Source: Macrostomum lignano (Eukaryota). Taken from it: a stretch of DNA of 64,000 nucleotides. Position numbers and translations under genes: made by a program. The notes beneath the pieces are model-generated. The model had not been told where the DNA came from, did no database searches, and worked only from the letters and a program-made list of their open reading frames with translations. Below, one piece after another: positions 9,762-63,648 of the stretch; the first letter of the stretch is position 1; each line of letters opens with the position of its first letter. The stretch lies in contig NIVC01001166.1 of assembly GCA_002269645.1 (NCBI GenBank), positions 282,849 through 346,848 on the forward strand, written 5' to 3'.

Positions 9762-9822
<61 letters not shown>

Positions 9823-14295: not shown

Positions 14296-15565
14296 TGGCG
14301 CCTTTAACTTCATTCTTGGCGCCTTTAGCTTCATTCCTGGCGCGTCAGTTCCATTCTCAGGGCGCCTTTAGCTTCATTCCTGGCGCCTTTAGCTTCATTC
14401 CTGGCGCCTTTAGCTTCATTCTCGGCGCCTTTAGCTTCATTCTCGGCACCTTTGAACTCCATTCTCGGCACCAGTGGCCGTAGCAAGCCCCCCCCCCTGA
14501 AATTTCGCGCCAATGCAAAAAATCGAGCTATCAGTATACGCGTTAATATAGCCCCAAAAACACCGGAGTGATTCTTTAAAAAAAGGTATTATACTTAACA
14601 AAGATATGGAAAATTCTTATCATTTTTTTGGCTAAATTCCACACCGTACCGTAGGCAATAAAGTCTGCTCCTTTATAATGATCACGCACTCATATATTTT
14701 ATCAAAAAGATGTTGACAGTCACAACATAGTTACGATGTCTAGCAATGTCTGCAAGTCTACGTACTACTTAGTGAGTAGTGACCAAAAATATTCCTATCA
14801 TTATCTAGTGTAACTTGTAAGTCTAGTTCACAGATACTAAAACACTAGATGGTCCACTCCCTACCTTATCTCTGCAGTGCAAACTAATGCTCCTTTATTT
14901 AGCCTGCTCTTTTTTTGGGCACATGGAGCGCGAATTGATATTGAATTTAGTGATGAGTCATCAGATTCGTTGTTGTTGGCCATGGACAGAAGCTCGGAAC
15001 CAATAGAAACCCCTCTTTTCTGTGTAAAAAAAGCAAAAAAATACTTTTAAACGCTTGAAAAATAAGTTTTTTTTCGCGCCTACTGCTGCTGCAATTTTTC
15101 GCGCCATAATCGAAATTTTCGCGTATTCGCGCCATTGTCGCGCCACACTACAGCCACGTACTGCTCGGCACCTTTAACTCCATTATCGGCACCTTTAGCT
15201 CCATTCTTGGCACCTTTAGCTCCATTCTCGGCACCATTAGCTCCATTCTCGGCACCTTTAGCTCCATTCCCGGCACCTTTCACACCATTCTCGGCACCTT
15301 TATCTTCATCCTTGGCGCATTTGAGCTCCATTCTAGGCGCATTTGAGCTCCATTCTAGGCGCCTTGAGCTCCATTCTAGGCGCCTTGAGCTCCATTCTAG
15401 GCGCCTTGAGCTCCATTCTAGGCGCCTTTGAGCTCCATTCTAGGCGCCTTTGAGCTCCATTCTAGGCGCATTTGAGCTCCATTCTAGGCGCCTTTGAGCT
15501 CCATTCTAGGCGCATTTGAGCTCCATTCTAGGCGCCTTGAGCTCCATTCTAGGCGCCTTGAGCTC
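14296..15565. repeat. 20/21-bp minisatellite (GGCGCCTTTAGCTYCATTC..) split by the MITE at 14472-15163
   Basis: Direct observation. Confidence 0.92.
14472..15163. mobile_element. hAT-like MITE (692 bp) inserted in a 21-bp satellite
   Basis: Ends CAGTGGCCGTAG... and ...CTACAGCCACGTACTG (imperfect TIR). Flanked by the 8-bp direct repeat CTCGGCAC (14464-14471, 15164-15171); the satellite resumes on both sides. Confidence 0.7.
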
Positions 15566-15947
15566 CGTATCCGGCTGTGCATGGAAATCAAATCAAAAGA
15601 CGGAAGTAGAATTTCAAGACAACCCATCAGTTTTCGCACTGCGCCAACAGCGAGACGCCAGCAGCCAAACAGATACAAAAAATCTGCTTTAGTTTAAAAC
15701 TTTGGTTAAATTTTGTGAACACGAAAGAATTGCTTTGAGAAAATCAATGAAAACGGTTTCAATAATTGGTGGAATTGGTGCGGTAGTATAAAAGCATGAG
15801 CCACACTGGCAGAAACAGTTTAATAGGGATTATACCCAGTCATCTGGTTGCCAAGCAGACTTGAATCAATTGAGCCATAGGCAGTTGCTTTACTAGTTCT
15901 TCACGGCATCATTTAGGGCTGAAAGTTTGTTTAGGATCTTAACAAAG

Positions 15948-16430
15948 CTGAAGCATTAATCCTTCAGGACAATGATTAGGCCTGAAGCATCAATCCTTCA
16001 GGACAATGATTAGGCCTGAAGCACCAATCCTTCAGGACAATGATTAGGCCTGAAGCATCAATCCTTCAGGACAATGATTAGGCCTGAAGCATCAAACATT
16101 CAGGACAATGATTAGGCCTGAAGCATAAAACATTCAGGACAATGATTAGGCCTGAAGCACCAATCCTTCAGGACAATGATTAGGTCTGAAGCACCAATCC
16201 TTCAGGACAATGATTAGGCCTGAAGCATCAAACATTCAGGACAATTATTAGGCCTGAAGCATCAATCCTTCAGGACAATGATTAGGCCTGAAGCACCCAT
16301 CCTTCAGGACAATGATTAGGCCTGAAGCATCAATCCTTCAGGACAATGATTAGGCCTGAAGCATCAATCCTTCAGGACAATGATTAGGTCTGAAGCAAAA
16401 ATCCTTCAGGACAATGATAAGGCCTGAAGG
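15948..16430. repeat. 34-bp minisatellite (GAAGCATCAATCCTTCAGGACAATGATTAGGCCT)
   Basis: About 14 head-to-tail units just downstream of the FOXRED1 stop; each contains a CTTCAGG-N12-CCTGAAG inverted repeat. Confidence 0.95.
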
Positions 16431-16521
16431 ACTAAAAGAACAACTTAGGCCAGCACACAAGCCTCTGCAAATTCAACAATAAAAACGCCGATCCATCCCA
16501 GACCTTGGGACGCCTCCAGCC

Positions 16522-22500: not shown

Positions 22501-25500
22501 TCTTAGTGTCTGTCCTAGTGCCTGTCTTAGCGCCTGTCTTAATGCATGTCTTAGTGTCTGTCCTAGTGCCTGTCTTAGCGCCTGTCTTAATGCCTGTCTT
22601 AGTGTCTGTCCTAGTGCCTGTCTTAGCGCCTGTCTTAATGCATGTCTTAGTGTCTGTCCTAGTGCCTGTCTTAGCGCCTGTCTTAATGCATGTCTTAGTG
22701 TCTGTCCTAGTGCCTGTCTTAGCGCCTGTCTTAATGCATGTCTTAGTGTCTGTCCTAGTGCCTGTCTTAGCGCCTGTCCTAATGCATGTCTTAGTGTCTG
22801 TCCTAGTGCCTGTCTTAATGCATGTCTTAGTGTCTGTCCTAGCGCCTGTCTTAATGCATGTCTTAGTGTCTGTCCTAGTGCCTGTCTTAGCGCCTGTCTT
22901 AATGCATGTCTTAGTGTCTGTCCTAGTGCCTGTCTTAGCGCCTGTCTTAATGCATGTCTTAGTGTCTGTCCTAGTGCCTGTCTTAGCGCCTGTCTTAATG
23001 CATGTCTTAGTGTCTGTCCTAGTGCCTGTCTTAGCGCCTGTCTTAATGCATGTCTTAGTGTCTGTCCTAGTGCCTGTCTTAGCGTCTGTCTTAATGCATG
23101 TCTTAGTGTCTGTCCTAGTGCCTGTCTTAGCGCCTGTCTTAATGCATGTCTTAGTGTCTGTCCTAGTGCCTGTCTTAATGCATGTCTTAGTGTCTGTCCT
23201 AGTGCCTGTCTTAGCGCCTGTCTTAATGCATGTCTTAGTGTCTGTCCTAGTGCCTGTCTTAGCGCCTGTCTTAATGCATGTCTTAGTGTCTGTCCTAGTG
23301 CCTGTCTTAGCGCCTGTCTTAATGCATGTCTTAGTGTCTGTCCTAGTGCCTGTCTTAGCGCCTGTCTTAATGCATGTCTTAGTGTCTGTCCTAGTGCCTG
23401 TCTTAGCGCCTGTCTTAATGCATGTCTTAGTGTCTGTCCTAGTGCCTGTCTTAGCGCCTGTCTTAATGCATGTCTTAGTGTCTGTCCTAGTGCCTGTCTT
23501 AGCGCCTGTCCTAATGCATGTCTTAGTGTCTGTCCTAGTGCCTGTCTTAATGCATGTCTTAGTGTCTGTCCTAGCGCCTGTCTTAATGCATGTCTTAGTG
23601 TCTGTTCTAGTGCCTGTCTTAGCGCCTGTCTTAATGCATGTCTTAGTGTCTGTCCTAGTGCCTGTCTTAGCGCCTGTCTTAATGCATGTCTTAGTGTCTG
23701 TCCTAGTGCCTGTCTTAGCGCCTGTCTTAATGCATGTCTTAGTGTCTGTCCTAGTGCCTGTCTTAGCGCCTGTCTTAATGCATGTCTTAGTGTCTGTCCT
23801 AGTGCCTGTCTTAGCGTCTGTCTTAATGCATGTCTTAGTGTCTGTCCTAGTGCCTGTCTTAGCGCCTGTCTTAATGCATGTCTTAGTGTCTGTCCTAGTG
23901 CCTGTCTTAGCGCCTGTCTTAATGCATGTCTTAGTGTCTGTCCTAGTGCCTGTCTTAGCGCCTGTCTTAATGCATGTCTTAGTGTCTGTCCTAGTGCCTG
24001 TCTTAGCGCCTGTCCTAATGCATGTCTTAGTGTCTGTCCTAGTGCCTGTCTTAATGCATGTCTTAGTGTCTGTCCTAGCGCCTGTCTTAATGCATGTCTT
24101 AGTGTCTGTTCTAGTGCCTGTCTTAGCGCCTGTCTTAATGCATGTCTTAGTGTCTGTCCTAGTGCCTGTCTTAGCGCCTGTCTTAATGCATGTCTTAGTG
24201 TCTGTCCTAGTGCCTGTCTTAGCGCCTGTCTTAATGCATGTCTTAGTGTCTGTCCTAGTGCCTGTCTTAGCGCCTGTCTTAATGCATGTCTTAGTGTCTG
24301 TCCTAGTGCCTGTCTTAGCGCCTGTCTTAATGCATGTCTTAGTGTCTGTCCTAGTGCCTGTCTTAGCGCCTGTCTTAATGCATGTCTTAGTGTCTGTCCT
24401 AGTGCCTGTCTTAGCGCCTGTCTTAATGCATGTCTTAGTGTCTGTCCTAGTGCCTGTCTTAATGCATGTCCTAGCGTCTGTCTTAATACCTGCCCCAGTG
24501 TCCTAGTGTATCATAAATGACTTACTGCCTGTCCTAACACCTGGCTTAGTGGTTGTCTTATCTGTATGACATTACACAAACGGTGCCTCTGTACCTACCA
24601 GAGCAGCCTTCAGCCGCTCCTGTTCAAATTAGGTTAAGCAATTATTTATAATAGATAGATACGAGTACCTATCACTGACTTACAAAAACTTTTTATGACG
24701 TCATTCAATTTTTCCAATCACGCTATATAACCCTAGCTAATTAACCAGAGACAGACAGCTATTTAATGACGTCATCAAACCCTAGCCAATCAGAGACAGC
24801 TTTTTAATGACGTCATCAAATCGACCTCATCAAACCCTGACCAATCAGAGACCGACAGTTTTTAATGACATCATACTGCACTAACTAAATCAGTCAGTGA
24901 CCGGAATCGCCCCAGCAACCATGAATAAAGAAAAGCTACAAACCGAAGGCTCCCAGAGCGATATCGGACACATTCAGCCATGGCCAGGTCTCTTTCATCT
25001 TCTCCGGCGACATGAGGTCCACTTTTGCGCCAAGCTTCCTGACAGGCGGTAAATGAATAAGGAAAAGTTAATGAGAATTCATTAATGGATACTATAGCTG
25101 TTTTAACTGACCTCTGAGCCTGATTGTTCGTACGCAGGGTCTCTGCGTTCGCCTCATCTGCCAGGACCAAGTAGCCATGAGGGGCGTAGCAAATGTCCGG
25201 CGGGTCCAGGTCTGAGGGACAGAGTGAGGGTGGGTTGGGTGGAACGGCCCGTTGAGCTTGAGCAATGGCACCAGAAGCACGTGTGATCAGGATGGGATCA
25301 CAGAAGAAAATGAAATCACAGAATCCAATTATTAGAATCATAGAAGTTAATGAGATCACTGAAGCCAATGGGATCACAGATGCCGATGGGATCACTGAAG
25401 CCAATGGGATCACAGATGCCAATGGGATCACCGAAGCCAATGGGATCACCGAAGCCAATGGGATCACTGAAGCCAATGGGATCACTGAAGCCAATGGGAT

Positions 25501-37150: not shown

Positions 37151-38513
37151 ACTGGGAAATGCTATGTTATATTATAGACTGATGCAGTTTCACTATCAGT
37201 GAATCACTAGTTTTTTGGGCTATTTACTAAGTTGCATGATTATCTAGACAACCAAAGTATAGGCCTATACTAGACACCTTTTTGACAATTGGATTTATTA
37301 TATTGGTATTAGATTACTTTTTTATTAGGCCTTTTTATAATTTAAGTACTATAAACTAGGGTAACAAAAAGCAGAGGTACCAAAAAGTATGGATACCTAT
37401 TAATTCTATTGGTTAGGTTAGGCCCCAGGTTGCAGATGGTATGCATGCCAGGTTGCGGATAGTATGCATATATGCCAGAAAGTTCTGGCATACAAAATGG
37501 CCACCCTAAGTCCTTGGCGTACACATTCGGCATACACAACCCCTGGCAAACTTTGTTGGCATAGACTATTGGCGTACATAAGTAACACAGCCACGCATAC
37601 TTTTTTGGCATACAAATTTTGGTGAATAAATTCATGCCATGCTTGAAAATTGTAATGTAAATTAACATTTTTATGTAAAGTAATGGAAAATTTGTATTGT
37701 CAGTGATAAAATTTTTGCTTCTTTTGAAATTAACAATGAATAAAATTAATGTAAATTTTTGCTAAGAGTATCATTTTGCATCATATTTTTTGTAGGTATA
37801 ATTTAGGTTTGTTTAAATTTAAAATATTTTTAATATTTTAAAAACACTTTCATACAAAAGCTTTTCTTAGAAAACTTTATTTATGAAATCTGTATTACCT
37901 TTTTTAGGAATTTTTGGCATACATTTTAGTGCAACATTTTGTTTTTGGTATACATTGGCATACAAAGTTCTTGATGCCCGAATTTGGTCCAGCGTACACG
38001 GATACATGATCCGCACACTGGTATGCATGTATGCCAGAACTTTCTAGAATACAAAATGGGAACCCTAAGTCCTTGGCAATACAACCCCTGCCCTAGTGCA
38101 CCTTGTTGGCATACACAATTGGTGTACACAAGTAATCATACATGCGCAACCTCCAAAATTTGGTTGGCCATGCGACTTAGTTTTAACAAAAATGTGACAT
38201 AGTTTTTGGCTAAAAATATGACTTACATATAAAAAACCCTAAAGCAAAATTACCGCAACTTTGGGTAAACGGCAGGAATAACTATGACTATCTTATTAAG
38301 CATACATGCGCAACTGCTGGCCGACCTGGCCGATCCGGCCACCGTAAATCGTGGCTGACCAGGGGTAAGTCGCAAAATTGAGTCAACCAAAAACAGAAAA
38401 ACACAAGAACCAAGAAAGGCAAGAGGAAAGCGAAAGAAAGAGCAGTTCAGGGAAAATAATGAAGCAAAAGAAAAACAATTCGCAAAAGAAGCAAACTAAG
38501 TTGTAAAAATAAT

Positions 38514-38960
38514 CAGGTAAGTCGCAAAAAGGATCAGGTAAGTCGCAACAGGAATCAGGTAAGTCGCAACAGGAATCAGGTAAGTCGCAACAGGAATCAG
38601 GTAAGTCGCAAAAGGGTTAGGTAAGTCGCAAAAAGGATTAGGTAAGTCCCAAAAAGGATTAGGTAAGTCGCAAAAAGGATTAGGTAAGTCGCAAAAAGGA
38701 TTAGGTAAGTCGCAAAAAGAATCAGGTAAGTCGCAAAAGGATCAGGTAAGTCGCAAAAGGATCAGGTAAGTCGCAAAAGGATCAGCTAAGTCGCAAAAGG
38801 GTTAGGTAAGTCGCAAAAAGGTTAGGTAAGTCGCAAAAGGGTTAGGTAAGTCGCAAAAGGATCAGCTAAGTCGCAAAAGGATTAGGTAAGTCGCAAAAAG
38901 GATTAGGTAAGTCGCAAAAAGAAGCAACTAAGTCGCAATAAGAGGGAAGTAAGTCACAAT
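38514..38960 (+). repeat. 20/21-bp minisatellite containing AGGTAAGT (about 20 units)
   Basis: Units of [C/T]AGGTAAGTCGCAAAA(A)GGAT. Confidence 0.95.
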
Positions 38961-46900: not shown

Positions 46901-49900
46901 GAATAAATTCACTTGAAGTGCCTCTAAAAGCGGTCAGTAACTTCTCAGCGCGCTCTGCAGCATATTGAACACAATCTCCTCCTGATATATTGCCAGGAGC
47001 GGGCTGTGGAAACCACATGAAAGGGCCCAGAAAGAGAAGCCATGCAGGAAATCGGAGACAATTGAACCACGATGAAGGAAAGGCCGAGCCTGAATAAACA
47101 AAAGAGAAGCAGGCAAAGAGCACACAAAGCCAGATGATCGGCTGCTCAGCAGAAAAGACCAAGCCGGCTCCCACAGCCGCCTTCTTCCTGCACAGGAGAG
47201 TTTTCACTCGCTCTATAGTTTTCATTGCTGGGCCATCCAAACAGCAGCGGCAGCAGGCCAAAGGGATTGGGGCTGAGCAGGGATAGGGGCAAGCAGAAAT
47301 AGCTCAGACTGAGTTGAGCCAGACCAGCACGGCTGGGACGGCTGGCAGCAACAGACCCCGGTTGAAGAGGGGAAACTTTTCTCCCCCAGCTCCCAGCGTA
47401 AGCGTATAAAGCAGCCCTCCAGTTAATCTTCTCCCATCTACTAAAAAGCAGATAGCGCGCGTAACAGCAGTTTTCTAAATTGCTATTGTTGCAGAGCATC
47501 GCAGATTGTGATGCTGACGCATCAGATTTTGAGTCACCGATAGCCGAAATGCAACAGAGACGCAGGGACCGAGGCGGCATAGCCATCTGGCACCGTCTGA
47601 GCGCCATCAGCGAGGCTTCCGACGACCGAGCGACGAGTTCAGCCGATGACGAGGAGATCAACACCAGCATTGCCGAGGTGCGAGAGTTTCACGAGCAGTT
47701 CGGCCGTGACAGCGGTGGCAGGAGCAGCGCCAGCCATCGCTCCGGCAAGCGATTCGCAACGCTGATGCGACCCCAACCGGAGGGTCTGGCCGGTGAGCTG
47801 CTCACGCAGCGGGTGACTCAGCTGGATGAGCAGCGCGATTACCAGCCAGCACTGCTCGGCCTTCCAGGACTTCCAGCAGGTGAGCTGAGGTTTCATTTTG
47901 ACCAGCAACTGAGAGCCAATGAAACTAAAAACTGTCGCAGACAGTCTTTTGCTTTCGTTGAATATTTTCCGCTTTCCTAGTTGCTACCTCAGCAAATATC
48001 GATTTCAAGGCTAAGCTAGTACTCACTAAGGGGTTTTCGACGTATTAATTTGCATTATTTATGCGCCCACGAGACCCCAAGTGTTCCAGGCAGTTTCGTG
48101 TGATTTACTCAGAATGTAACTGGACCAACTAGCATTACTAGACCGGCCAATTGGTGTGGGAAAGTCCAAACTAAATGCTCTCGGGGCCCAAAGTATGCGA
48201 GAAAGTTGAGCCTCACCAGCGAATTCTTCCACTCTCTTCTCTCTGCCCTCTCAGGCGGACTCGTGACCGCCGTAGCCTCGTCAAGTGCTCGAATTTTGGA
48301 CTGCACTTCAACCACCGCGCCTGCGGCTGCAGCCTCGGAGGAAGAGGTGGAGGTGCGCGTGACCGCGGAGGCCACGGGGCCCAATCCCAGCGTGGCGCTG
48401 GCCAGGGCGGCCGCCAGGGCAGCCGGAGCTGCTAGTGCGGCAGTGAAAAAGAGCCGCAGCGTTCGAAGCCATTGCGTGAACGCGTCAGAAGCGGAATCGG
48501 AGTACCGCATCTTCATATCAACTTCTTGCACACTGCGAGAGCCGCAGCGCCTAGACGGAGACGGCAAGCTGAAGAACGTAATGAGCTCCACCCAACCTCC
48601 CACAGAGGAAGACATCGTAGAAATTTTTCAAGTGGCACCTGAGCTGCAAGAGTACCAAAGGTGGGCTGTAACTGGGGCCGGCGATGTTGAGTTCGCGTTC
48701 ATATCGGACAGCGAGCCTGGCTCACCGACTCCGGACGTGGAGGAAAATCCACAGCCGAGTTCGCGCTCGCAGCAACAGTCAGCGCTTCTGCAGGCGACTC
48801 AGGCGGCACCAGGTCAACAGCAAGAGCAGCAGCAGCAGCAGCAGAGAGGACGGTTGCCTGGTCCGAATTCGCTGCAGGCTGACCAGCGCAGGCTGCAGGC
48901 TGCTCGAGATGCCTACGCCGCCGTGAAAACGGTACCCACGAGGCCCCGACCAAGTCTATCGCTGCCCCGTCTGAGCAATTCCGTCAGCAATGGAGCGGCT
49001 GGCGCCACTTCAGTGGTAAATAATCAGCGTTGGAGTGACGTCAGCACGAGTTCTGGCAGCCTTCGCCAGCTTCGACGGTTACTGGGTGACGATGAGGCTG
49101 TTTGCGCCTCCCATTCGATGACGGATGGACTGGTGTTGGATCAACAGCAAAGTCGAGAGCTTCAGCAGCGCTCGCAGCCATCAGTAACTGCTCCGAAGTC
49201 GGTGTCCCTGTCTGACCTGTTGGATTCAGACGTCGGAAACAGTGGTAGCATCGATGCTGATGTGTCGCATTCATGCGCTTCTCTGTTGGAAACCGACAAT
49301 GTCAACACATTAACTTCTAAAGAGTCCTTGAAGCAAAGCCTTAAAAGACTAAAATTGCCCTCTAGTCGTCGGGCCGCCGCCGATCAAGCCAAAGTTAGAA
49401 GCGCCAGCTTGTTCTTTGAGTGGTTGGAGCAGAGAGCGAATTCAGAGCGCGAGCGGAGCATCTGCCGTTCTCTGACTCGACTGGAAGCTCCAGTCTGGCT
49501 GGATAACCTTGCTAAAGACGCACCGGAAGCTCCAGTCTGGCTGGATAACCTTGCTAAAGACGCACCGGGACCACTAGATACGTCTCTCCGAGTCAAGGAG
49601 AACCGGAACTCATGGAGACCGTCAGCTACATCAATCGAGCCATCGTCATTGATAAAGGGCAGCGTCGATGAGATTACTTGGAAAACGCGTCCGATACACG
49701 GCAGTCTCAGCTTACCAATGCGCCTGTCCAAGCAAACCAATCGAAGCTCAGATCATGGAAAAGCCAGTAGCACTGATGGAAATTTAAGGATCAAGCAGAC
49801 AAGTGCAGGGACTGATCGAGTCGATGGCAGCATCAGCAACCGAGCTCGCTTCTTTACAGAGAGCAGTCTCAGCCGGCAGGTGCGTCAGGCAGCGGCCGCT

Positions 49901-51631
49901 CAGCCAAGGCCGCCAACACTCTCAGAGCTCGCGGCCAGATTGAACCGGCCGCCACTGTTGCCCGTGACTCTGACGCCTGAAGATTTCCAACCGAAAGCTC
50001 GGGCTCAAACTATGCCTGAGGAGATTCAACCAATGAGCAGCTCCGACGCATCAGCAGGTCAAAAGCGGGACTCGGGCGCTTCTATGGCCTCGGTGACATC
50101 CTCGTCATCAACGACGTCGACATCCTCAAATTCTCAGTCATCGTCTGCGTCGACTAGTAGCGAGACAGGAAATTCGGAAGCAGCAGAGAAGACAGAGGAG
50201 TCCACAGTAGTTCAGACGTCAATAGTGCAGGTGTACACTCGAGTCCTGCATCCCACTGTTAATCACGGCCCAGTGACGCAACACTCGGATGCCGAGCTGC
50301 TGCCGGGGCTTCTAGCGTGCCAGTTAGACCCGACAGGACCATCGACCGAGAACGATCTGATGACGGCACCGAAGCTGTTGAAGCTTGCTGAGGCTCAGAT
50401 CGAGCGTCAACGCAGCAGACTTGCCGAGTGGCAGAACGATGCCGCCGAAGGTCGACCAACAACCGCACGTCAAGAGGAGCTGCTGGCCGTCAATGATGAA
50501 GTGCTGCGCTACTTTCGCGTCAACAGCGGGGGGCCTGACCGTGCCGATCGTCGTCCGGAGTCTCCTTCGCTAGCTGACGATGACGTCTTGCAGGCGCTGG
50601 GTGACTATGAGGCCTCCAGCAAACTTTCTCGTGTCCTCGTGGCCCTCAGCGGAACTAGAGAGCGGAAGTTGCAGCAGCCTCAGAGAAGTCTGGCCGAGGC
50701 CTGCCATGGCGTGATACGAGAAGGTCAGCACTACTTATTGGAGTGCGCAAACCCGTCTTGCGCTCGTCGCTGTGACCTTGACAGACGTCTTGCTAACGGC
50801 TTCCATTCCTGTCGAGAGTGCCGCACATTTTACTGCAGCCAAAAATGCGGCTCCGATCATGCTAGCGCACACGGCCGCTCCTGCTGCTGGAATCGAAGAG
50901 TGGACGCCTGCAAGAGGGTCATCGCTGGCTGCCTTCTTGCCGACACTTCACCTGCAGTGGCGCTACTCTCGCGTCTGGCCCGCGCCTCCTCTCGGAGCTT
51001 TTGTTGGCGCGGATGTCTCCTGTTGGCACTTCGCGATTCAGCCGCGGCTGCCCGATTCGTAACAACCGATGGCAAAGAAGGGCTGATGCGCCCTCCGGCG
51101 CTGCTCGACCTGTCAACTCTCTCCGGCGACCTGGCCGACGCGAGCAAATCCTGCAATCCGGACGCCGCCTTTGTTGTCTGCGTTGTCGTTGGCACCGGCG
51201 TCAAGTGGGCGAAACTCCGTCTGTCGGCGAGGACAAAATCAGACGTGGATACAACCGAGGAGGACGCAGACGCGGACCGCCGGCGCCGCTGGGCCTACCT
51301 GTCGCGGGTGGAGCGATTGCTGCGCGAGCGCGGCGTCAGCCTTCGCCGCCAGTTTCCGCAGCTACGAGAGCGGCTCGTCGCCTACGCGGAGACCGGGGCG
51401 CCGTTCCTGCCAGCCGTGGTCTACCCCACCGACAGGGCCACCGGGCGGGCGTTTGCGTGCCGCCTGGCGCCCGACCGCGAGCCGGAACTCGAATGGGTGC
51501 CTCTCGCCGTCGCCGTTGCGCCTGAGGAACCAGCAAGTTCAGTCGGCGAAGTCGTGGGCGATGCGCCACGAGCAAAGCAGAGGCAGCCGCCGTTTTATCG
51601 TCGCCGGCGGGTTGTGTCCACCGACCTGTAG
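44000..51631 (+). CDS. ajm1: Apical junction component 1 (AJM1/AJM-1)-like protein; exons ~44000-44494/44528, 45719-45768, 47495-47879, 48255-51631
   Basis: The C-terminus has a MYND-like Cys/His cluster (CANPSC...CRECRTFYCSQKC...H...H...C) followed by ERLLRERGVSLRRQFP...Y.E.G..F.P.V.YP.DR.TGR.F.C, which I recognise as the AJM1 family C-terminal region. The N-terminal part is long, low-complexity and Ser/Ala/Gln-rich. The 45768/47495 (phase 0) and 47879/48255 (phase 1) junctions are GT-AG and in frame. The first exon and true start are uncertain. Confidence 0.72.
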
Positions 51632-53066
51632 CTTACAGTTTCCTATGCAGATCATAGTTAATTATGCTTTTGTAGAATAAAAACTCTTATTTTGCTACTA
51701 CTACTAGTAGACTGGCTAGTGAAAATCGAAAAATATTTTAGCATATCTTTGATTCTGATAAAGCAAGAAAATAGTTTGAGAGTTTGATGATGAGGACAAG
51801 GGGGATGGTGACAATACCAGTCATAAAGGTCTTAGCATACTTTGTAAACAAGAGCTCTTAGAATCTCAGAAGCATATGCTTCATTTAAGCAAGGTAGTCA
51901 TAAAAATCCGTAAATATTTATATTTTCGATAGCTGCGTCAAGTTACAAAAGTTTGCTATTTTTTTCTATCGCCGAATTTAGTCTTCTGCCATTTTTCATC
52001 GATCACTGCATCCGAAAGCATGAACTGTTGTAAGATTTTTATTGTTTTCATTTCATCATCTTATCTATATAATTTTCGAGATTCTTTTGCTATGAATAAA
52101 GTCGTTTTTACCCCGCTGTGCGAAGATTAAGTTATCTAAATAACAACATCAGTAATAGCAGGTGGCTAAATCACCATTTAGACTTTCAGCTGTTACGCAT
52201 CAAGAGTGTTGGCTTCATTGAAAACCGTGATATGAAGATAAATAAACTGCGTTTTAAAGGCTGGCCAATTATTCAATATATAAAAAAGGTCTTTTGATTT
52301 AAAAAGCGAGTTTCAGCTCCGTAAAAATGATATCTGATGATTAAAACAAAATGATATGACATTTTACCGATTAACGAGCATTGAAAACAGCCACCAGCTG
52401 GACGAGACTTTTCACAGGTTGAGAACACCCATGAGGCTCACTGTGGGGCTCACGGATATCCAGCTGGTGGCTCGCATTCTGACACATGCTTTTGAAGTTC
52501 TGATAAAGACTACGCATTTTATAATCCTAGTGCAACGCTCGCGACCAGGGATTTCTTTGATGGCAATACTATAGATAAACGCAGTATTTGTCTATCTGGA
52601 GCTCGCTGTGACTAAAAGCCTTAGCTGCTGGTAGCTGATTTTTGTAATCTATAAATGAAGTCCTGCCGGCAATCCCTGAAGTTTGGTCTGACCAAGCCGG
52701 CAGGAACGGCTTTGCATAGCAGAGTGTGAAAGTAGCAGCGATAGTCTATGGCCAGCCCTGCTGACCCAGCCGGCAGGAACGGCTTTGGCTTTGCATAGCA
52801 GAGTGTGAAAGTGGCAGTGATAGTCTATGGCCAGCCCTGCTGACCAAGACAGCAGAAGCGGATTTTTTTTCAGTCTTCGGCGTAAAGGAGATTTATTAGC
52901 ACCATCTAGTCAGTGAAAAAAATATGAACCAGTTTAGACTGGGCATAAATTGTGTTTTGACACATTTTTTCAAACGGGCACCTTAAAATTTCAACAGTTA
53001 TGTCCGCTTTGCATCTCGATTATACTTGGCATCTTCGTAGGCGCTGTCACGAGACTGTCCTGACAC

Positions 53067-54492: not shown

Positions 54493-56415
54493 TTAAAACT
54501 TCTTGAAAACCGGATGAGTAACCTCGACGGCCACTCGACGTCTGCAGCTGCCGTGAGACCTCACCTCGAGCCAGTGCTTGCACCGAAACACGAACCCGAA
54601 GTACCGAAACGTCTTCAACGCTGTCAGAAGTCGCAGCAGGTCGAAGGCCACATCGAAGTCACTGATGCACCGCTGGAACGTCTCCGTGACGAACGCGATG
54701 AGAAAGTTCAGCAGGTTGAGGCCCACAAACACGAAGAACAGCACGTGGATGATGAGAACCATCACGCTGTCCAAGCTGAAGGTGATCATGTTGAGGATGA
54801 CCTTGACCGACGAGTAGAGCGACAACAGGCCGGTCTCGAAGTCGGGCGAGTCAACCAAGATGAAGAAGTCCAGGCTGAAGAGAATGATCCAGTAGAACAG
54901 CAGCGGCAGCGCGGCCAGGAAGCTGGACAGCATGCAGTGGAAGGTGAAGAAGAGCTTCCCGACCGACTTCGTCACGATCTCCATGTACTGCGCAAAGTGC
55001 AGCAGCGTGAACGCGATGAAGAGAGTGTTGGACCCAATTAAAAGCTGTTCCATTACACCTCTTGGCTCAAAGTATTCATAAAAATTTTTGAGTTGCAGTG
55101 CTGAAGCGAATATAAAAAAGCTGATTCCGCTTACGAAAGCCACCGCCTGATAGAAATCAAAAGTCGAGCGGCGCACAAAGCGCCCAGTTGAGCTGTCGAT
55201 GGGCGCCACAGTCTTTGTCTTTCGCTGGCACTCAACAAAATAGAGCACCAACTTGATGAGCATAATGACCATATGAAACACGGAGACAAATGTTATCATT
55301 AAATAGCTCAAAAGCATCGAGTCAAATAATTCACCGCAACTATACTTCTTTACCGTCTGGCTGTTAAAAATCTCATGGTACAGCGTCGCGTTGGAAAGAG
55401 ACGATGTGTTGTAGCCTGCCCGAAAAGCGGCGGCAAAGGTTGCTCGGTTGCAGTGAATGAGGTTGCCAAAACAGGCGACTGTCAGCATGATTGATTCGTT
55501 CACGGCAGTAAGAAGAAATACCGATGTTGGAACGCTCATCACCAGCAGCCTCAGAAATGTGATCGCTCGAGTCTGACGGTACGTCAACCGAAGCCACTGT
55601 CGGATGAGAGGGTCCTCCATCAGCTTGGACTTCTTGAGCGACTCGACCTGACTCGACGCTACATAGGTGAGCAGGTGCAGAGGACTCGAGTTGCACCGGC
55701 TCCCGTGACACAGGTCGTAGTCGGTGAGGTCGTAGAGACGGACGGCCCAGCCGCCGGATCGAGTCTCCGATTTCAACAGGTAGTTCGGCAGGTGCAACAT
55801 CTTGCGGGCCAGTCGGAATGCAGCGAACTTCACGCACGCCTCCAGAGGTCGGAGACCGCTCGAGTCCTCCTGGGTGACCAGCCTGTCTAGCAGACGAGGC
55901 TCTCTACTCAGCGTCGAGAGGAGCGCCGTCTCCAGACGCTTGGCTCGCTTGAACCTCGGCGCGTACATCTGGCAGCGAGCCAGACTGTGTACAACGGTGC
56001 TGCCGTCGAGCTCGAGCTGAGCCGCGTGCTCGGAGCTGTCTTCCAACAGAGCCTCGAACACTCGCACGGACTGCAGCAGAATCGCCAGGTGGATCGCGTA
56101 TCCGAACTGCAGACTGACGAAGCCCCACTTTCGGCGACTTCTCGGCAAGCGACACCGGATCTCGTGGCTTTCGGTCACGTCGACCAGAGGCTGGGCGAGC
56201 CTTCCCGACAGGTCCGGCTTCAAAGCTCGCATGAAGGCGTCAGGGTCGTCATCGACCAGAGCAGCCAGCGCCGCTTCTGCCGATTCCATATTGAACAACT
56301 CTTTCAAGTTTGTATCGTTCTGACTCGGCAGCACCCGATTACCTGCAAGAAGTGAAATTCTGTTGCTGGAGCGAACTCTGATAAAGTCGTTAGTAGCCGG
56401 GATCCCTTCGCCCAT
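54493..56415 (-). CDS. Divergent TRPV-like ankyrin-repeat ion channel, copy 1 (intact, 640 aa; shared MESAE start at 56289)
   Basis: Degenerate ankyrin repeats (GYAIHLAILL, DGSTVVHSLA, DSSGLRPLEACVK), LYDLTDYD (cf. TRPV YDLTEID), SPLHLL, then about six hydrophobic segments, a pore region F.TGLLSLYSSVKVILNM and S6 LNLLNFLIAFVTETFQR (cf. TRPV LNLLIAMMGDTHWR). Uninterrupted ORF. Confidence 0.7.
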   Translation of the reverse strand: MGEGIPATNDFIRVRSSNRISLLAGNRVLPSQNDTNLKELFNMESAEAALAALVDDDPDAFMRALKPDLSGRLAQPLVDVTESHEIRCRLPRSRRKWGFVSLQFGYAIHLAILLQSVRVFEALLEDSSEHAAQLELDGSTVVHSLARCQMYAPRFKRAKRLETALLSTLSREPRLLDRLVTQEDSSGLRPLEACVKFAAFRLARKMLHLPNYLLKSETRSGGWAVRLYDLTDYDLCHGSRCNSSPLHLLTYVASSQVESLKKSKLMEDPLIRQWLRLTYRQTRAITFLRLLVMSVPTSVFLLTAVNESIMLTVACFGNLIHCNRATFAAAFRAGYNTSSLSNATLYHEIFNSQTVKKYSCGELFDSMLLSYLMITFVSVFHMVIMLIKLVLYFVECQRKTKTVAPIDSSTGRFVRRSTFDFYQAVAFVSGISFFIFASALQLKNFYEYFEPRGVMEQLLIGSNTLFIAFTLLHFAQYMEIVTKSVGKLFFTFHCMLSSFLAALPLLFYWIILFSLDFFILVDSPDFETGLLSLYSSVKVILNMITFSLDSVMVLIIHVLFFVFVGLNLLNFLIAFVTETFQRCISDFDVAFDLLRLLTALKTFRYFGFVFRCKHWLEVRSHGSCRRRVAVEVTHPVFKKF

Positions 56416-57402
56416 TACTTTGTGCAGCTGAACAGTTTGCCGCAGAATCAGTCCGGTCTCTGTTAGTTTTCTGGTGCGCTGCTTTTATGAGCTTTGCAAA
56501 GTATAGCCGCCAGAAAATCAATATTCAGGGAATCACTGGTCACAAGCGTACATTTTTCTCCAAAACATTTGACCAGCCTGAACAAACAATGGCCACTGAA
56601 CCAGAGTCAGTTCTAGCGATAAAGTCAGGCAGGTATGGTCTCGATGGCGCAGAGCAAACAACATTATCAAATGAATTGATTTGGCGATGAAAGTAGCCCA
56701 ATAATGCTATGTAACTTATTTCTGCATAGCCTGAGTTTATTGCAGCGAAACTTTTTGGGAGCCACTCTGAAGAGCAACGGCTCTCCAGCAAAAAGGTGCT
56801 CATATATTGATATTAAAAACTATGGTTGAATTTTTTAGCCGTTGAATTGAGTAACGATCCGATTCCAGAAAGGCATCTCCGTGTTTGAGCTTTTTAGCAT
56901 GCAAATTTAAGTTTAAATCTCGATAATCAAGATTCAATCAAGGGAACTGGCAATAGCTCAAGTCTAGCAACAAATTTCTTGACTGTTTTAAAAACCGACG
57001 AAAACTTGTCTACGAGCTCCAATCTCCAAGCCGTGTTTGCAGCCATGGACATCTGTGCTGTGGTCTGCTCTTCCTTTTACTCCAGTCTTGAGGTCACTAT
57101 TGGTGGTCCTGTTTTCCTCTGTCATTTGAGCAAGTCACATGAAAAGCCGTGTTTTCCTGGAGTCCAAAAGTGCAGTAAACATGTTTACTACGCTCGCTGG
57201 CCTGTGTTTACGGGGACCACGACTCCGGCCTTCTCAAAGGCGGGAGGTGACGTCAGTTCTAAAAATAGATACTGAGTCACGCAATCTGGCGCACAATGGT
57301 GCAATGGGGATTCCCAGCATATATGTACGGGCCCCCCTCACCCTTGTTTCCGTCAAGGATTTCACTTTCAGTTTTTAGTTCTTCTGCTACCATGTTTCCG
57401 TC

Positions 57403-57732
57403 TGTAATACGCCTGACTAAACATAGACGCCCAAGTCTAAAGGAGGCCTACATCGCCTTCCCAACCACCCACTGGGCCCAGCTGGATCTGCTGACCAGAC
57501 GCCTTGTTCGTTAATCTTCAAATCTGCACGCGGTGCTGAGTTCGTTTACTTGTTTATTTTGTTCCGACGGGAAGCCCACCTCATCGAAAGCCGAGACCTG
57601 AAGAAACTGGTGGCAGCACTAGCTACGCTACGATTGAAGACTCCCGATCAAAAGGACGAAAAGTCAATTTAACTGTGCTGGCGCTGTCCGAGTAGGTAGC
57701 ACAGGTACAACATTGGTGGCAGCGATGGGATT
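57403..57732 (+). mobile_element. Truncated Gypsy-like LTR plus primer-binding site
   Basis: ...ACAACA (57712) is followed by TGGTGGCAGCGATGGGATT, a near-perfect tRNA-Leu PBS (consensus TGGTGGCAGCGGTGGGATT). The 5' boundary TGTAATAC at 57403 is inferred. Confidence 0.6.
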
Positions 57733-58152
57733 CTGAAGACCTACCAAACCACCCCGAGACAACCATCAATACAACACTTTCGATTGAGTGATGAAGCATA
57801 TTGTATTTCTGTCTCCAGATCCTAGTAACTTTCGACGAAGCCGATGTGTGTTAGTGGTAAATTCTACTTTAAATTTGAAAACGAACTCATTCAATAGCTC
57901 GAGACTAATACGAGTTTAAAACTGAATATCGGACCCGTTCAACTGGAGCGCCTGAGAGGACAGCTGCTAAACTCAAGTCTAAATAGGAAGACAACGCCCA
58001 GGGGTTGCCCAGGAATTCAGGGGAGCACTGCATTCAGAGCCATTTGGGAAGTCAGCTGGGCTACTGACAGACGGGCTGAAGGCCAGGGAGCGGTTCTCAT
58101 AGACCATGACTCTTATTCTCTTACACTGTTTCAAAGTGGAAAGGCAAATATA

Positions 58153-60092
58153 GTGGACGCAGATAAAACACTTCTGGCTGACTTCGGTATGCGAGAAATT
58201 TTAAAGCAAATCGAAACGCAGCAGAAAGAGCCAAAAAGTGCAAACATGATTCGGGAAGGGAAACAAAGCATGGAATCGGCAGAAGCGGCGCTGGCTGCTC
58301 TGGTCGATGACGACCCTGACGCCTTCATGCGAGCTTTGAAGCCGGACCTGTCGGGAAGGCTCGCCCAGCCTCTGGTCGACGTGACCGAAAGCCACGAGAT
58401 CCGGTGTCGCTTGCCGAGAAGTCGCCGAAAGTGGAGCTTCGTCAGTCTGCAGTTCGGATACGTGATCCACCTGGCGATTCTGCTGCAGTCCGTGCGAGTG
58501 TTCGAGGCTCTGTTGGAAGACAGCTCCGAGCACGCGGCTCAGCTCGAGCTCGACGGCAGCACCGTTGTACACAGTCTGGCTCGCTGCCAGATGTACGCGC
58601 CGAGGTTCAAGCGAGCCAAGCGTCTGGAGACGGCGCTCCTCTCGACGCTGAGTAGAGAGCCTCGTCTGCTAGACAGGCTGGTCTCTCAGGAGGACTCGAG
58701 CGGTCTCCGACCTCTGGAGGCGTGCGTGAAGTTCGCTGCATTCCGACTGGCCCGCAAGATGTTGCACCTGCCGAACTACCTGTTGAAATCGGAGACTCGA
58801 TCCGGCGGCTGGGCCGTCCGTCTCTACGACCTCACCGACTACGACCTGTGTCACGGGAGCCGGTGCAACTCGAGTCCTCTGCACCTGCTCACCTATGTAG
58901 CGTCGAGTCAGGTCGAGTCACTCAAGAAGTCCAAGCTGATGGAGGACCCTCTCATCCGACAGTGGCTTCGGTTGACGTACCGTCAGACTCGAGCGATCAC
59001 ATTTCTAATGCTGTTGGTGATGGGCATACCACCAGCAGCATTTTTGTTGACGGTGTTTAGCCAATATGTAATGCTACTTGTATCAAGTTTTGGTTTGCTG
59101 ATTCACTGTAATCAAGCCACCTTCACAGCCGCAGAGAAGCTAGGCTTCAATGAGACCGTGTTGTTGAACTCAACCCTCTTTTGGAAAGTGTTTAATGATC
59201 AGACAGTTAAGCAGACTAAGTGCTCAAGAATCGGCGAGGCAATATTTGTAAACACTTGTGTGATTTTTGCGGTTCTGGTCTTCAAAGTCATCGTAGCCTG
59301 CGTGAAGATTGTTCTGTGGCTCCTGGAGCGGAGTCAGCGGATGAAGCTTCTCACAGCCGACAACTGGCGACCCACGCACCGATTCGTCCGTAGAACAATG
59401 TTCGACGTTTACCTGGCAGTAACTATTGCAGCAGCTCCTGCTTCCTAGTTGTTCTGTTCACCAACTTTTGGGCGAACTACTCAGGGTGGTACCGGACACT
59501 GCTCCCCATCAACCAGCGGTCTGGCTGGGTCACCGAGCAGCTGTTTCTCGGCTCGAATGCTTTATTTATCGCATCCGTTCTCTTGCAGTATTCCCAGTAT
59601 TTGGAGATTGTATCAAGAGGCATTGGGAAACTGTTTTTCATATTTCACAGCATGATGACAAGTTTCCTGGCTTCCATGCCTCTGCTTTACTTTTGGATAA
59701 TTTTGTTTAGTTTGATTTTCTTCATCCTGGTTGACACGCAAGACTTTAGCACTGGTTCTCTATCTTTGTATTCATCCGTGAGAGTCATACTGAACATGAT
59801 CAACTTCAACCTAGACAGTTCCATCGTTCTCATTATTCATTTCGCATTCTTTATGTTTGTCAGCATCAACCTGTTGAACTTTCTCATAGCGTCTGTCACA
59901 GAGACGTTCCAGCGGTGCATCAGCGATTTCGACGTGGCGTTCGACCTGCTGCGGCTTCTGGCAGCGCTGAAGACGTTTCGGTACTTTAAGTTTGTACCCC
60001 GGTGCAATCACTGGCTAGAAGTGAGATCTCATGGCATCTGCAGACGTCGGGTGGTCGTTGAAGTTGTTCAACCGGATTTTAAAAGGCAATAA
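58153..60092 (+). CDS. Divergent TRPV-like channel, copy 2 (one frameshift near 59425-59435; pseudogene or sequencing indel)
   Basis: 58270-59006 is a near-identical inverted copy of 55553-56289. After VTIAAA the homologous frame shifts to SCFLVVLFTNFWANY...EQLFLGSNALF...QYSQYLEIVSRGIGKLFF and continues through ORF 59583-60092 (LNLLNFL-type S6, WLEVRSHG). Confidence 0.68.
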
Positions 60093-61007
60093 TGTCCTAA
60101 TCGTCTAAACCAGCGAATACCTTCGTGGCAAAGTCCTCGAAGCTTCCTTTGTTTGGAAGCTTGATTCGCGATGTTTAGCTGGATTAACTTGATTAGAGGC
60201 AGGCGATTCAGCTTTCCTAATATTTCTCCATACTGCTTAGTCATTGCGCAGAATGCTGTGTCGTTTACCTTGTTTTTCTCCCGTCTCAGTCCGTACATCT
60301 ACGAGTACACTGCTTGAATATTTTGCATTCACGAATAAAACGTACTTTGAGCCAACATACGCTCGTATATTCAACTATTTAATCGTAAGTTTCTGTTGAG
60401 TACTACGAGTAGTTTTCACCCGTGAGTGAAACCAGCTTCATTATAAGTTAACCCTGGAAGGCGAGTGTTCAGCAACTATTGCTACGAGCGTACGTACCGA
60501 CCAATTTGGAAGGTTACAAATGAAGGTTAGATAAAAGGCGGGACGTTCAATATTTATTGGCAGTTTATAGCAATCAATTAAAGGTTGCCCGAAATACTAA
60601 ATGACGAAATTAGCACTTGCTCCTAGCGACTCTTGGATGCTTATCACAGAATCGCGCTTAGAATTTTTATAGTAGATTACGACGCTTGTACAATAATTTA
60701 CCGATTGTAAAGGAATTACACGTAGTACAATAAGGGCCACTTCAAAGCAGCAGAGAAGTTAATCCAAGATTTAAAAGGTTTCCAGAAAAACTTTAAGAAA
60801 GCACATTTGAAAGAGATATGGGATGGGACTTTTGCAAAGGAAAATAGTGTAAAACTAATGACGCATAAATATGAAACTGCAATATTGTTTTGCGCTCTAA
60901 GGTTCATGTTGTACTCGCGACTCTCAGGAAGGGTGCACCTACGAGGGTCAGAGTACGCGGGCCCGTGCTGGCCTGCGTCGGGGTGCGAGTGTCCGCACGG
61001 GACCCTA

Positions 61008-61148
<141 letters not shown>

Positions 61149-61736
61149 CTACCTGGCCTAGTCCCCCTGAGTCGGCGTCAGGACACACGGACTGTCCCTG
61201 CTACAGCTCCCGAAATGAAGAGACAAGGCAGTGACTTACTTCGCGGATAGCTCGCCCTTGCGCGTGCGGTCAATAAATCGTAGCTGAGGTCTGCTCGCGG
61301 CTGGTGGACCCGATGGTCAATGTTTATTGCGTATGTGTTAGGGGAAGGACGGTCTAAAGACGCTGTAATCGGCGCTCTGGGCCTGCGTTGTAGAGTGCGG
61401 CAAACCAAAACAACCACGGGCCGACAGCCACCCGCCCCGGCCGCGCCTTAAAATGCCACGACCCTCCCGGAGCCGGGGCTCCCCCCCGCCCCACCCCCGC
61501 CCCACCCCGGCCCAGCCACCCACCGGCCAATCACGGCGCAGCTGGGGGAGGCCAGCCCGGGAGGAAGGCCAAAAGGGCGGCCCAGCCAACCAGCGCGCAG
61601 ACAACCCAAAGGGCTAAGCGGCTTACACCGCCGAGCCTATCACACCAAAAACAAATACGGAGCAGAGTGCACTTTGGCAGGGCAAGCGCACGGGCACAAC
61701 GTTCAGAAAGTCGTCGAAAATCTCTAAAAGAATGCA

Positions 61737-63648
61737 TTAAATATCCGGCAAAGATTCCATTTCTCGACTACAGGATCTAAAATTTTGCTGCTTCCGCTTG
61801 AATTCACTTTTCGAGTACAGCCTCTTGAACACCGGTTGAACAACCTCAACGATAACCCGCCGTCTACAGCTGCCGTGAGACCTCACCTCGAGCCAGTGCT
61901 TGCACCGAAACACGAACCCGAAGTACCGAAACGTCTTCAACGCTGTCAGAAGTCGCAGCAGGTCGAAGGCCACATCGAAGTCGCTGATGCACCGCTGGAA
62001 CGTCTCCGTGACGAACGCGATGAGAAAGTTCAGCAGGTTGAGGCCCACAAACACGAAGAACAGCACGTGGATGATGAGAACCATCACGCTGTCCAAGCTG
62101 AAGGTGATCATATTGAGGATGACCTTGACCGACGAGTAGAGCGACAACAGGCCGGTCTCGAAGTCGGGCGAGTCAACCAAGATGAAGAAGTCCAGGCTGA
62201 AGAGAATGATCCAGTAGAACAGCAGCGGCAGCGCGGCCAGGAAGCTGGACAGCATGCAGTGGAAGGTGAAGAAGAGCTTCCGACCGACTTCGTCACGATC
62301 TCCATGTACTGCGCAAAGTGCAGCAGCGTGAACGCGATGAAGAGAGTGTTGGACCCAATGAACAGTTGCTCCACAGCTCTACCGTTGCTCTGGTCGCTTG
62401 GATACAAATTTTCATAGAAATTATCGGACCTCAGGAACGTCGCGACAACTAGAAAGCAGATGCCACTCGCGATTGCAACAAAGTGATAAAAATCAAAGAT
62501 GCCCGTCGAACAAATCTGTCAAGCAGCGACCAGTTGTCCGCAGTCAATATTTTTTTCTTATTTTCGTGTTCAAGCGCAGAGAATCCAGTCTTCAGAGCCG
62601 CAGTGACGCACATGAAGGCAGTCACGAGACTAATCACCAGAAAGTTTATGTCGATGGATTGAAGAAATTCTGCACAGCTTTTTGACTTTATTTTTTGCTG
62701 ATTAAAAAACGTAAAATAAATGGTTAAATTGCTCAAAACGCTGGCATTGTATCCTGATGATTTTGCAGCAGAAAATGTTGCTCGGTTGCAGTGAATGAGG
62801 TTGCCAAAACAGGCCACCGTCAGCATGATTGATTCGTTCACGGCTGTAAGAAGAAATACCGATGTTGGAACGCTCATCACCAGCAGCCTCAGAAATGTGA
62901 TCGCTCGAGTCTGACGGTACGTCAACCGAAGCCACTGTCGGATGAGAGGGTCCTCCATCAGCTTGGACTTCTTGAGCGACTCGACCTGACTCGACGCTAC
63001 ATAGGTGAGCAGGTGCAGAGGACTCGAGTTGCACCGGCTCCCGTGACACAGGTCGTAGTCGGTGAGGTCGTAGAGACGGACGGCCCAGCCGCCGGATCGA
63101 GTCTCCGATTTCAACAGGTAGTTCGGCAGGTGCAACATCTTGCGGGCCAGTCGGAATGCAGCGAACTTCACGCACGCCTCCAGAGGTCGGAGACCGCTCG
63201 AGTCCTCCTGGGTGACCAGCCTGTCTAGCAGACGAGGCTCTCTACTCAGCGTCGAGAGGAGCGCCGTCTCCAGACGCTTGGCTCGCTTGAACCTCGGCGC
63301 GTACATCTGGCAGCGAGCCAGACTGTGCACAACGGTGCTGCCGTCGAGCTCGAGCTGAGCCGCGTGCTCGGAGCTGTCTTCCAACAGAGCCTCGAACACT
63401 CGCACGGACTGCAGCAGAATCGCCAGGTGGATCGCGTATCCGAACTGCAGACTGACGAAGCCCCACTTTCGGCGACTTCTCGGCAAGCGACACCGGATCT
63501 CGTGGCTTTCGGTCACGTCGACCAGAGGCTGGGCGAGCCTTCCCGACAGGTCCGGCTTCAAAGCTCGCATGAAGGCGTCAGGGTCGTCATCGACCAGAGC
63601 AGCCAGCGCCGCTTCTGCCGATTCCATGCTTCGTGTGTTAGAAAGCAT
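61737..63648 (-). CDS. Divergent TRPV-like channel, copy 3 (two apparent 1-nt deletions near 62495 and 62280; pseudogene or sequencing indels)
   Basis: 62777-63627 matches 55439-56289 and ~61860-62359 matches ~54540-55038. At 62280 it reads gagcttccgacc where copy 1 has gagcttcccgacc (one C lost). Near 62495 the RFVRRAS-FDFY motif is broken by one missing base. Confidence 0.68.

Follow-up and report, generated by a model that had tools for sequence, protein, structure and literature searches.

Three intron-less genes predicted to encode TRPV-like ion channels, c1, c2 and c3, are found in a 64,000-nt stretch of Macrostomum lignano DNA (NCBI GenBank assembly GCA_002269645.1, contig NIVC01001166.1, positions 282,849 to 346,848 of the forward strand). 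This whole stretch is referred to below as the window, and positions are counted from its first nucleotide. The most probable explanation of the relationship among the three genes, to which we assign a probability of about 0.72, is that they are old paralogues of a lineage-specific TRPV/TRPVL-type family that have been homogenised regionally by recurrent non-allelic gene conversion biased towards G and C (GC-biased), and that the middle of each gene has been left diverged passively. An earlier reading of the letters (the original prediction) had taken the same genes for an array of constant-variable-constant receptors, in which a sensor cassette diversifies or is swapped in from a larger family.

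Layout of the three copies

The first copy, c1 (54493-56289, minus strand), is an intact single-exon TRPV-like gene of 598 codons plus stop, with its ATG at 56289. Its open reading frame (ORF) in the ORF list runs from 54493 to 56415, and the upstream ATG at 56415 would give a protein of 640 amino acids (aa). The ATG at 56289 (MESAEAAL...) is, in a three-way alignment, the exact onset of the identity of c1 with c2 and c3. An inverted copy, c2 (58270-60092, plus strand), stands head-to-head with c1 across a 1980-bp spacer, and c3 (61737-63627, minus strand) has the orientation of c1 and lies tail-to-tail with c2. Three copies at the predicted coordinates were thus recovered, but with the order minus, plus, minus and a spacing of 2-7 kb the "array" is not a simple tandem, c2 being on the opposite strand. 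In a repeat search, c1/c2 and c2/c3 appear as inverted repeats of 863-949 nt with 91-94% overall identity, 2.0 and 3.5 kb apart, and c1/c3 as direct repeats. Among the three, only c1 has an intact ORF.

The end of c3 is 373 bp from the edge of the window, and tblastn and blastn searches with c1 found no extra copies or fragments in the 64,000 nt. The DNA flanking c1, c2 and c3 is mutually unrelated and cannot be aligned (alignment, blastn and tblastn). That c1 and c3 are uncollapsed alleles was rejected, because both their flanks and their middles are unrelated.

Identity between the copies is a mosaic

The distribution of identity was determined from the three-way DNA alignment with 50-nt sliding identity, the repeat search, and blastn and tblastn. 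Synonymous (dS) and nonsynonymous (dN) divergence, and the corresponding uncorrected proportions of differences (pS and pN), were computed per segment by the Nei-Gojobori method, with segments given in c1 codons.

The three copies share a 737-bp block A (c1 55553-56289, minus; c2 58270-59006, plus; c3 62891-63627, minus), which encodes the N-terminal cytosolic domain with the ankyrin-like helices, the linker beta-hairpin and the region before transmembrane helix S1. The predicted coordinates of this block were reproduced, and in its 737 bp c3 differs from c1 at 1 site and c2 from c1 at 5 sites; over codons 1-245, dS is 0.005-0.016 in all pairs. In the adjoining S1 segment (c1 55429-55552, minus, equivalent to c3 62767-62890; codons 246-287), c1 and c3 are ~95% identical over ~125 bp with dS 0.21, and synonymous sites are saturated relative to c2.

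The variable stretch follows (c1 55048-55428, minus; c2 59131-59537, plus; c3 62369-62766, minus), covering the S1-S2 extracellular loop, S2, the S2-S3 linker (RFVRR), S3 and the S3-S4 loop, the last being 7-8 codons longer in c2. DNA identity is 40-55% in every pair over ~380-410 bp, and in the middle (codons 288-414) pS is 0.80-0.90, which is saturated, and pN 0.40-0.46 in all pairs. A diverged stretch of about 400 bp between two blocks had thus been correctly recognised in the original prediction, and its assignment to the S1-S2 loop and S2 to S4 holds for the loop, S2 and S3, but S4 sits in the constant rear block.

This rear block, block C (c1 54565-55047, minus; c3 61887-62368, minus), contains S4, the S4-S5 linker, S5, the pore helix, S6 and the TRP helix. 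As expected from the prediction, it is near-identical in c1 and c3 (~480 bp, ~99% identity, with a 1-bp deletion at ~62280 in c3), with dS 0.04 from S4 to early S6 (codons 415-520), 0.026 in S6 and the TRP helix (codons 521-575), and 0.026-0.042 for the block overall. The c2 counterpart (59538-60020, plus) is not homogenised: its identity to c1 and c3 is 64-74% from S4 to early S6, where synonymous sites are saturated (pS 0.88), and ~90% further on in S6 and in the TRP helix, where dS is 0.64. The diverged zone of c2 therefore runs from 59007 (S1) to ~59860 (early S6), and the constant-variable-constant layout describes c1 and c3 but not c2, whose rear half is outside the constant set. The last 23 codons (576-598, ~70 bp) are diverged in all pairs (dS 0.6-1.0).

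The ratio of c1-c2 dN to c1-c3 dN falls from ~50 in block C to 1.25 in the variable stretch, which rules out uniform divergence and means that the segments differ in their histories. Without interruption, c1 and c3 are identical over up to 482 nt, and c1-c2 and c2-c3 over up to 233 nt, against maxima of 106 and 53-54 nt when the same differences were permuted (0 of 2000 permutations reached the observed runs). The sliding-window and per-segment dN/dS comparisons that had been proposed as checks thus both gave incongruent segments and non-uniform divergence. With dS passing from 0.005 to saturation inside one exon, the dN ratios above and the raised third-position GC content described below, the reading of the sharp identity edges as traces of gene conversion is upheld.

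Base composition follows the mosaic

The variable stretch was also said to be AT-richer than the constant blocks, and this is confirmed both for overall GC content (0.42-0.46, against 0.55-0.63) and for GC content at third codon positions (GC3; 0.47-0.65, against 0.76-0.92). GC3 is 0.76-0.77 in block A, and in block C of c1 and c3 it is 0.92 (codons 415-520) and 0.84 (codons 521-575), compared to 0.54 and 0.73 in the unconverted c2 counterpart. The middles have 0.54 (c1), 0.65 (c2) and 0.47 (c3), and other ORFs of the window 0.53-0.74, with a window baseline near 0.6. The contrasts are significant (Fisher P 1e-5 to 1e-14; c1/c3 versus c2 in block C, P = 1e-10). The value of 0.92 argues for a long history of biased conversion.

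A model of recurrent regional conversion

The pattern would be produced if non-allelic GC-biased conversion recurs among these closely spaced inverted and direct paralogues, keeping the first 737 bp near-identical in c1, c2 and c3, and the region of S4, pore, S6 and TRP helix near-identical in c1 and c3. Conversion tracts would stop where homology ends, which is upstream at the start codon, because the flanks are unalignable, and inside the gene at S1-S3. As the fastest-evolving part, S1-S3 would have diverged first and, at 40-55% DNA identity, would now offer too little homology for heteroduplex formation. At least four age classes of tract appear to be superimposed (dS 0.005, 0.03-0.04, 0.2 and 0.6). 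In this scheme the S1 segment with c1-c3 dS 0.21 would stem from an earlier conversion whose tract ended at another point, and the ~90% identity of c2 in S6 and the TRP helix (dS 0.64) fits an older tract as well. The "cassette" would be what conversion has left over, and not a defined module.

We regard the locus as a clear instance of regional gene conversion, though an ordinary one, since the process is known from other clustered families; it offers a clean, quantifiable example of GC-biased conversion inside single-exon ion-channel genes. No case of regional conversion in a TRP channel cluster was found in the literature on gene conversion in TRP channel arrays (including PMC11526382), which was represented mainly by titles and abstracts.

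Family assignment and predicted structure

No Pfam match was obtained for any of five ORF pieces, c1 among them, a phmmer search with c1 alone found no sequence match in the PDB, and a word-indexed homology search with c1 returned nothing above threshold. There were no close relatives of c1 in the searched collections, including metagenome contigs and exact-protein look-ups (the 640- and 598-aa forms of c1, and the first ORF of c3). A HMMER scan of 1.84 billion representatives recovered 175 relatives of c1 at E <= 0.001 (best 1e-19, 22-30% identity), most of them ~530-660 aa long. Some of these carry Pfam Ank and Ion_trans or PKD_channel matches, and named relatives include an "uncharacterized protein" of the nemertean Lineus longissimus and an "Ion transport domain-containing protein" of the annelid Ridgeia piscesae. 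Where the contigs of relatives were retrieved, the gene was one uninterrupted ORF on a eukaryote-like contig (5/5).

An alignment of c1 with 40 distant relatives (A1) was the base of both a profile and an AlphaFold2 (AF2) model. Although c1 alone had no match, the A1 profile finds TRPV6, TRPV5, TRPV3, TRPV4 and TRPV2 in the PDB at E-values of 1e-40 to 1e-32, and on TRPV6 it aligns from the last ankyrin repeats through the TRP helix (E 8e-40). It also aligns with the TRPV6 ankyrin repeats from residue 164 and with designed ankyrin proteins. The AF2 model of c1 from the 41-sequence alignment has a mean predicted local distance difference test score (pLDDT) of 80.6 and a predicted template modelling score (pTM) of 0.80; the single-sequence model (pLDDT 40) was unusable. 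In a Foldseek search with the former, the top 39 PDB matches are all TRPV1/2/3/5/6, with template modelling (TM) scores of 0.53-0.62 over ~590-620 columns, and TRPA1 is lower (0.36-0.41). The TRPV-like label given in the original prediction is thus supported by profile matches and by the ranking of PDB structures against the AF2 model. It holds only via the relatives, the profile and the predicted fold. The family may belong to TRPV, to TRPVL or to a separate clade; in the PDB ranking, TRPV stands well above TRPA1.

Like TRPV channels, the c1 model has six transmembrane helices and a pore helix (227-275, 318-357, 375-403, 411-435, 441-478, 487-498 for the pore helix, and 509-543), a linker beta-hairpin (strands 172-178 and 181-187), a C-terminal strand (586-591) and a post-S6 helix (545-579). 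Unlike them, c1 is short (598 aa), with ~3-4 predicted ankyrin-like helix pairs at residues 65-165 as opposed to six repeats; Ank Pfam matches are found in the relatives P0008, P0014 and P0021. The c1 gene also differs in being intron-less, and its S1-S2 loop in having predicted glycosylation and two conserved cysteines. A TRP box with a conserved Trp (IWKLQ-type) is a criterion for vertebrate TRPV channels. In c1, which reads DVAFDLLRLLTALK, there is no Trp at the TRP-box position (FDLLRLL), and the family consensus here is LQRL. The S6 of c1 (LNLLNFLIA..TE) resembles a sequence that we take to be typical of TRPV, LLNMLIALMGET.

These findings document an uncharacterised intron-less TRPV-like family in spiralian animals (Lineus, Ridgeia). 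TRPVL is a sister clade of TRPV that has been retained in molluscs and annelids, and both TRPVL and unclassified TRPV-like genes have been reported in taxa such as annelids and nemerteans (PMC12980990). TRPVL has no solved structure (bioRxiv 10.1101/2021.11.14.466824).

The diverged middle within the family

In a protein alignment of the three copies, the residues kept in the variable stretch are HCN.ATF, 2-3 N-x-S/T sequons, a second Cys, RFVRR and FD.Y; HCN.ATF, the sequons and the second Cys are located in the S1-S2 loop of the AF2 model. Given these residues and a pN about half of pS, the middles have been under protein-level constraint for most of their history. The limits of divergence depend on the partner: c1 is diverged from c3 from the S1-S2 loop to the S3-S4 loop, and from c2 from S1 to early S6. 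There is therefore no fixed module, and the idea of a fixed sensor cassette does not survive the comparison.

Across the family as a whole, conservation is lowest in S1-S3. Among the 40 relatives, which come from other organisms, column identity is 0.13-0.16 in S1-S3 and 0.28-0.35 in the N-terminal domain and S4-S6. Thus, a passive explanation of the diverged middle is sufficient.

Neighbouring relatives in other organisms were compared in two cases. A metagenome contig (L003; GCA_013332975.1, JAAUXT010115685.1) has three tandem relatives at 6080-16897, of 642, 643 and 671 aa, each in one ORF. The two closer genes are ~50% identical overall, with 50-78% in the N-terminal and pore parts and 17-20% around the S1-S2 loop, and no near-identical blocks were found between them. 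On this contig, exons of an EF-G/EF-2-like gene separate the second relative from the third. In Lineus longissimus, the products of the consecutive loci LOC135496281 and LOC135496280 (P0018 and P0282; 620 aa) are 94% identical in a nearly uniform way. The S1-S2 loop holds only a slight excess of their differences, with no mosaic at the protein level, and the pair looks like an ordinary recent tandem duplicate.

What c1, c2 and c3 show for TRP biology is that divergence in peripheral S1-S3 can reach saturation with the cytosolic and pore sequences still held identical; they are natural chimeras for probing the contribution of S1-S4 to gating. Recent duplication followed by local hypermutation was considered as a separate origin of the middles and was ruled out in view of the saturation of their synonymous sites, a pN of about half pS, and the presence of indels.

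Frameshifts in c2 and c3

In a three-frame translation, c2 has a single frameshift in S3, where one base is lacking around 59426-59435 (assigned to ~59430); its ORFs at 58153-59448 and 59583-60092 are in different frames. Two 1-bp frameshifts are found in c3, the first at ~62500, directly past RFVRR in the S2-S3 linker, and the second at ~62279-62281 (GGG to GG), inside the otherwise ~99% c1-identical block C. Its ORFs (62449-63648, 62108-62407 and 61737-62255) accordingly occupy three frames. When the three missing bases are restored, the frame-corrected translations of c2 and c3 contain no internal stop, and the C-terminus of c3 is 26 codons longer than that of c1. Small introns were ruled out as the source of these frame changes, since in each case only one base is missing and the homologous reading resumes at once in the next frame.

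Judging from its sequence, c1 is most likely a working channel subunit, and c2 and c3 are probably recent pseudogenes that are still exchanging sequence with c1. If the frameshifts were assembly errors, the locus would encode three subunits with identical N-terminal modules and, for c1 and c3, identical pore modules, which could co-assemble.

Weighing the alternatives

Several observations weigh against regional conversion with a passively diverged middle. The constraint on the middles (pN/pS below 1, and the kept sequons, cysteines and RFVRR) fits selection for different sensor modules equally well. The long conversion history implied by a GC3 of 0.92 would be difficult to maintain if c1 and c3 were the sole partners, which hints at more copies beyond the window. 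The three 1-bp frameshifts could be assembly errors, and the near-perfect identity could to some extent be exaggerated by mis-polishing between paralogues. Furthermore, with three copies in one window, homogenisation of the flanks in place and import of a foreign middle from unseen family members would look alike.

The first two of these points also count in favour of an adaptive sensor repertoire, in which selection would keep different S1-S3 sensor modules, conversion or selection would hold the assembly and pore modules interchangeable, the subunits could form heterotetramers with varied peripheral sensor domains, and the three genes would be members of a larger family. The middles keep fold-defining residues, and with pN 0.40-0.46 at about half of pS 0.80-0.90 they would have kept a function while most of this divergence built up; the parts that form the tetramer are identical, the GC3 of block C suggests a conversion pool of more than two genes, and invertebrates commonly have lineage-specific expansions and local clusters of TRP genes (bioRxiv 10.1101/2021.11.14.466824). 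However, the window holds three copies, two of them frameshifted, the variable zone has other limits in c2 than in c3 so that no fixed module is seen, the same region is the least constrained in the family elsewhere, and the adjacent Lineus pair is near-uniform at 94% identity. We therefore regard such a repertoire as unlikely. Neither many diversified members nor one expression site with many silent donors and switching was found within the window, and the locus alone does not establish a new kind of receptor system. A related and quite improbable scenario is that of a larger subfamily in which the identical blocks serve as homology arms and S1-S3 segments are shuffled between loci in the germ line, giving combinatorial TRPV-like subunits. 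Conserved identity of the tetramerisation and pore parts would allow these subunits to co-assemble, and the result would be a chemoreceptor-style repertoire on a TRP scaffold, of high interest if the genome shows many shuffled middles.

Programmed exchange would go one step further, with c1 as the expressed gene and c2 and c3 as silent, frameshifted donors whose middles are copied in via the identical arms. The combination of one intact gene with two defective neighbours, the c1/c3 arms of ~99-100% identity (737, plus 125, bp on one side and ~480 bp on the other) and the close inverted and direct spacing fit it formally. Nevertheless, nothing at the locus points to switching, no more than two donors are available and c2 has no 3' arm, and the donor frameshifts are inside the segment to be transferred, so a transfer would disable c1. 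Ordinary germ-line conversion explains the whole pattern, we know of no precedent for such exchange in ion channels, and the probability of this scenario is minimal. Collapse or cross-polishing of paralogue reads during assembly, with the frameshifts as consensus indel errors, would be compatible with the position of one frameshift in a short G-run within a c1-identical block and with the surrounding minisatellite-rich region, which is hard to assemble. However, cross-polishing erases a few percent of differences and cannot create 737 bp and 480 bp of identity beside 45% identity, and private differences persist in block A (5 in c2 and 1 in c3). The intermediate divergences (dS 0.2 and 0.6) and the GC3 gradient are biological signatures, 5-10 kb reads would anchor each copy because the flanks and middles are unique, and the intact ORFs of c1 (1.8 kb) and of its neighbour (3.4 kb) speak against a high indel error rate. 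An artefact of this kind is thus very improbable as the origin of the mosaic.

Comparison with known systems

The closest precedent for regional conversion at this locus is that in teleost protocadherin clusters. In the protocadherin variable exons of fugu, 3' parts that are >99% identical are ascribed to repeated regional gene conversion, with a rise in GC3 as its signature (Yu et al., PMC1852091), and regional conversion has also been reported for the clustered protocadherins of zebrafish (Noonan et al. 2004, as cited in PMC1852091). In the TRPV-like trio as in the protocadherins, one portion of a large single exon exceeds 99% DNA identity, synonymous sites included, while the rest is diverged and paralogue-specific, GC3 is higher in the homogenised part, and it is the cytoplasmic or constant-function part that is homogenised and the recognition part that is diverse. 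The trio differs in that homogenised blocks flank the diverged part, which is central, in comprising three genes rather than dozens, in the mixed orientation of its copies, two of which are frameshifted, and in belonging to another protein family, here an ion channel.

Inverted repeats and palindromes, such as the ampliconic palindromes of the human Y chromosome, undergo efficient arm-to-arm intrachromatid conversion in which the spacer is kept. The c1/c2 and c2/c3 pairs are likewise closely spaced inverted repeats, but the arms of the trio are only partly homologous and c1/c3 is direct, and an effect of the inverted geometry itself is no more than a possibility. Trypanosome VSG, Borrelia vlsE and chicken Ig pseudo-V genes are systems of diversification from silent cassettes. 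They share with the trio the constant-variable-constant layout and the presence of defective copies beside one intact gene. In contrast to them, the trio gives no evidence of somatic or programmed transfer and has two donors at most, the donor frameshifts of c2 and c3 are in the variable part, and the variable zone lacks fixed limits.

Other features of the window

Close to the three copies, a 79-bp unit and its tandem duplicate (90% identity) are found at 52708-52865, ~1.6 kb downstream of the c1 stop (54493). Between c2 and c3, a GC-rich block (0.65-0.75) of ~0.8 kb at 60900-61700 carries repeated GGCGTCAGG(A/G)C motifs and, at 61483-61513, a C-rich tract (CCCCCGCCCCA x2.8). The block, which has no Rfam or Pfam match, may represent a repeat element or a region resembling a CpG island. 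Neither Rfam nor tRNA scans gave a hit anywhere in the window, and Pfam found nothing in neighbouring ORFs, including those in the spacers.

At lower window coordinates than c1, an uninterrupted ORF of 1141 aa (48206-51631, plus strand) is GC-rich and of low complexity (S/A/Q-rich), without a Pfam match; by eye, a Cys/His cluster near its C-terminal third resembles a MYND-type zinc finger. A PIM-type Ser/Thr kinase is encoded on the minus strand in two exons (91-690 and 3522-4058) with an intron of ~2.8 kb between them. Among the named matches of this kinase, one from Macrostomum lignano is best (60% identity), followed by arachnids, fishes, a nemertean and annelids (54-58% identity). Minisatellites are dense at 6441-27163 and occur again at 38497-38942, with periods of 12-120 nt and up to ~100 copies (for example 7473-8695, 20246-21402 and 22181-24470). 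The first 27 kb of the window are dense in these arrays, which yield long spurious ORFs on both strands, and the region may be recombination-active and possibly subtelomeric.

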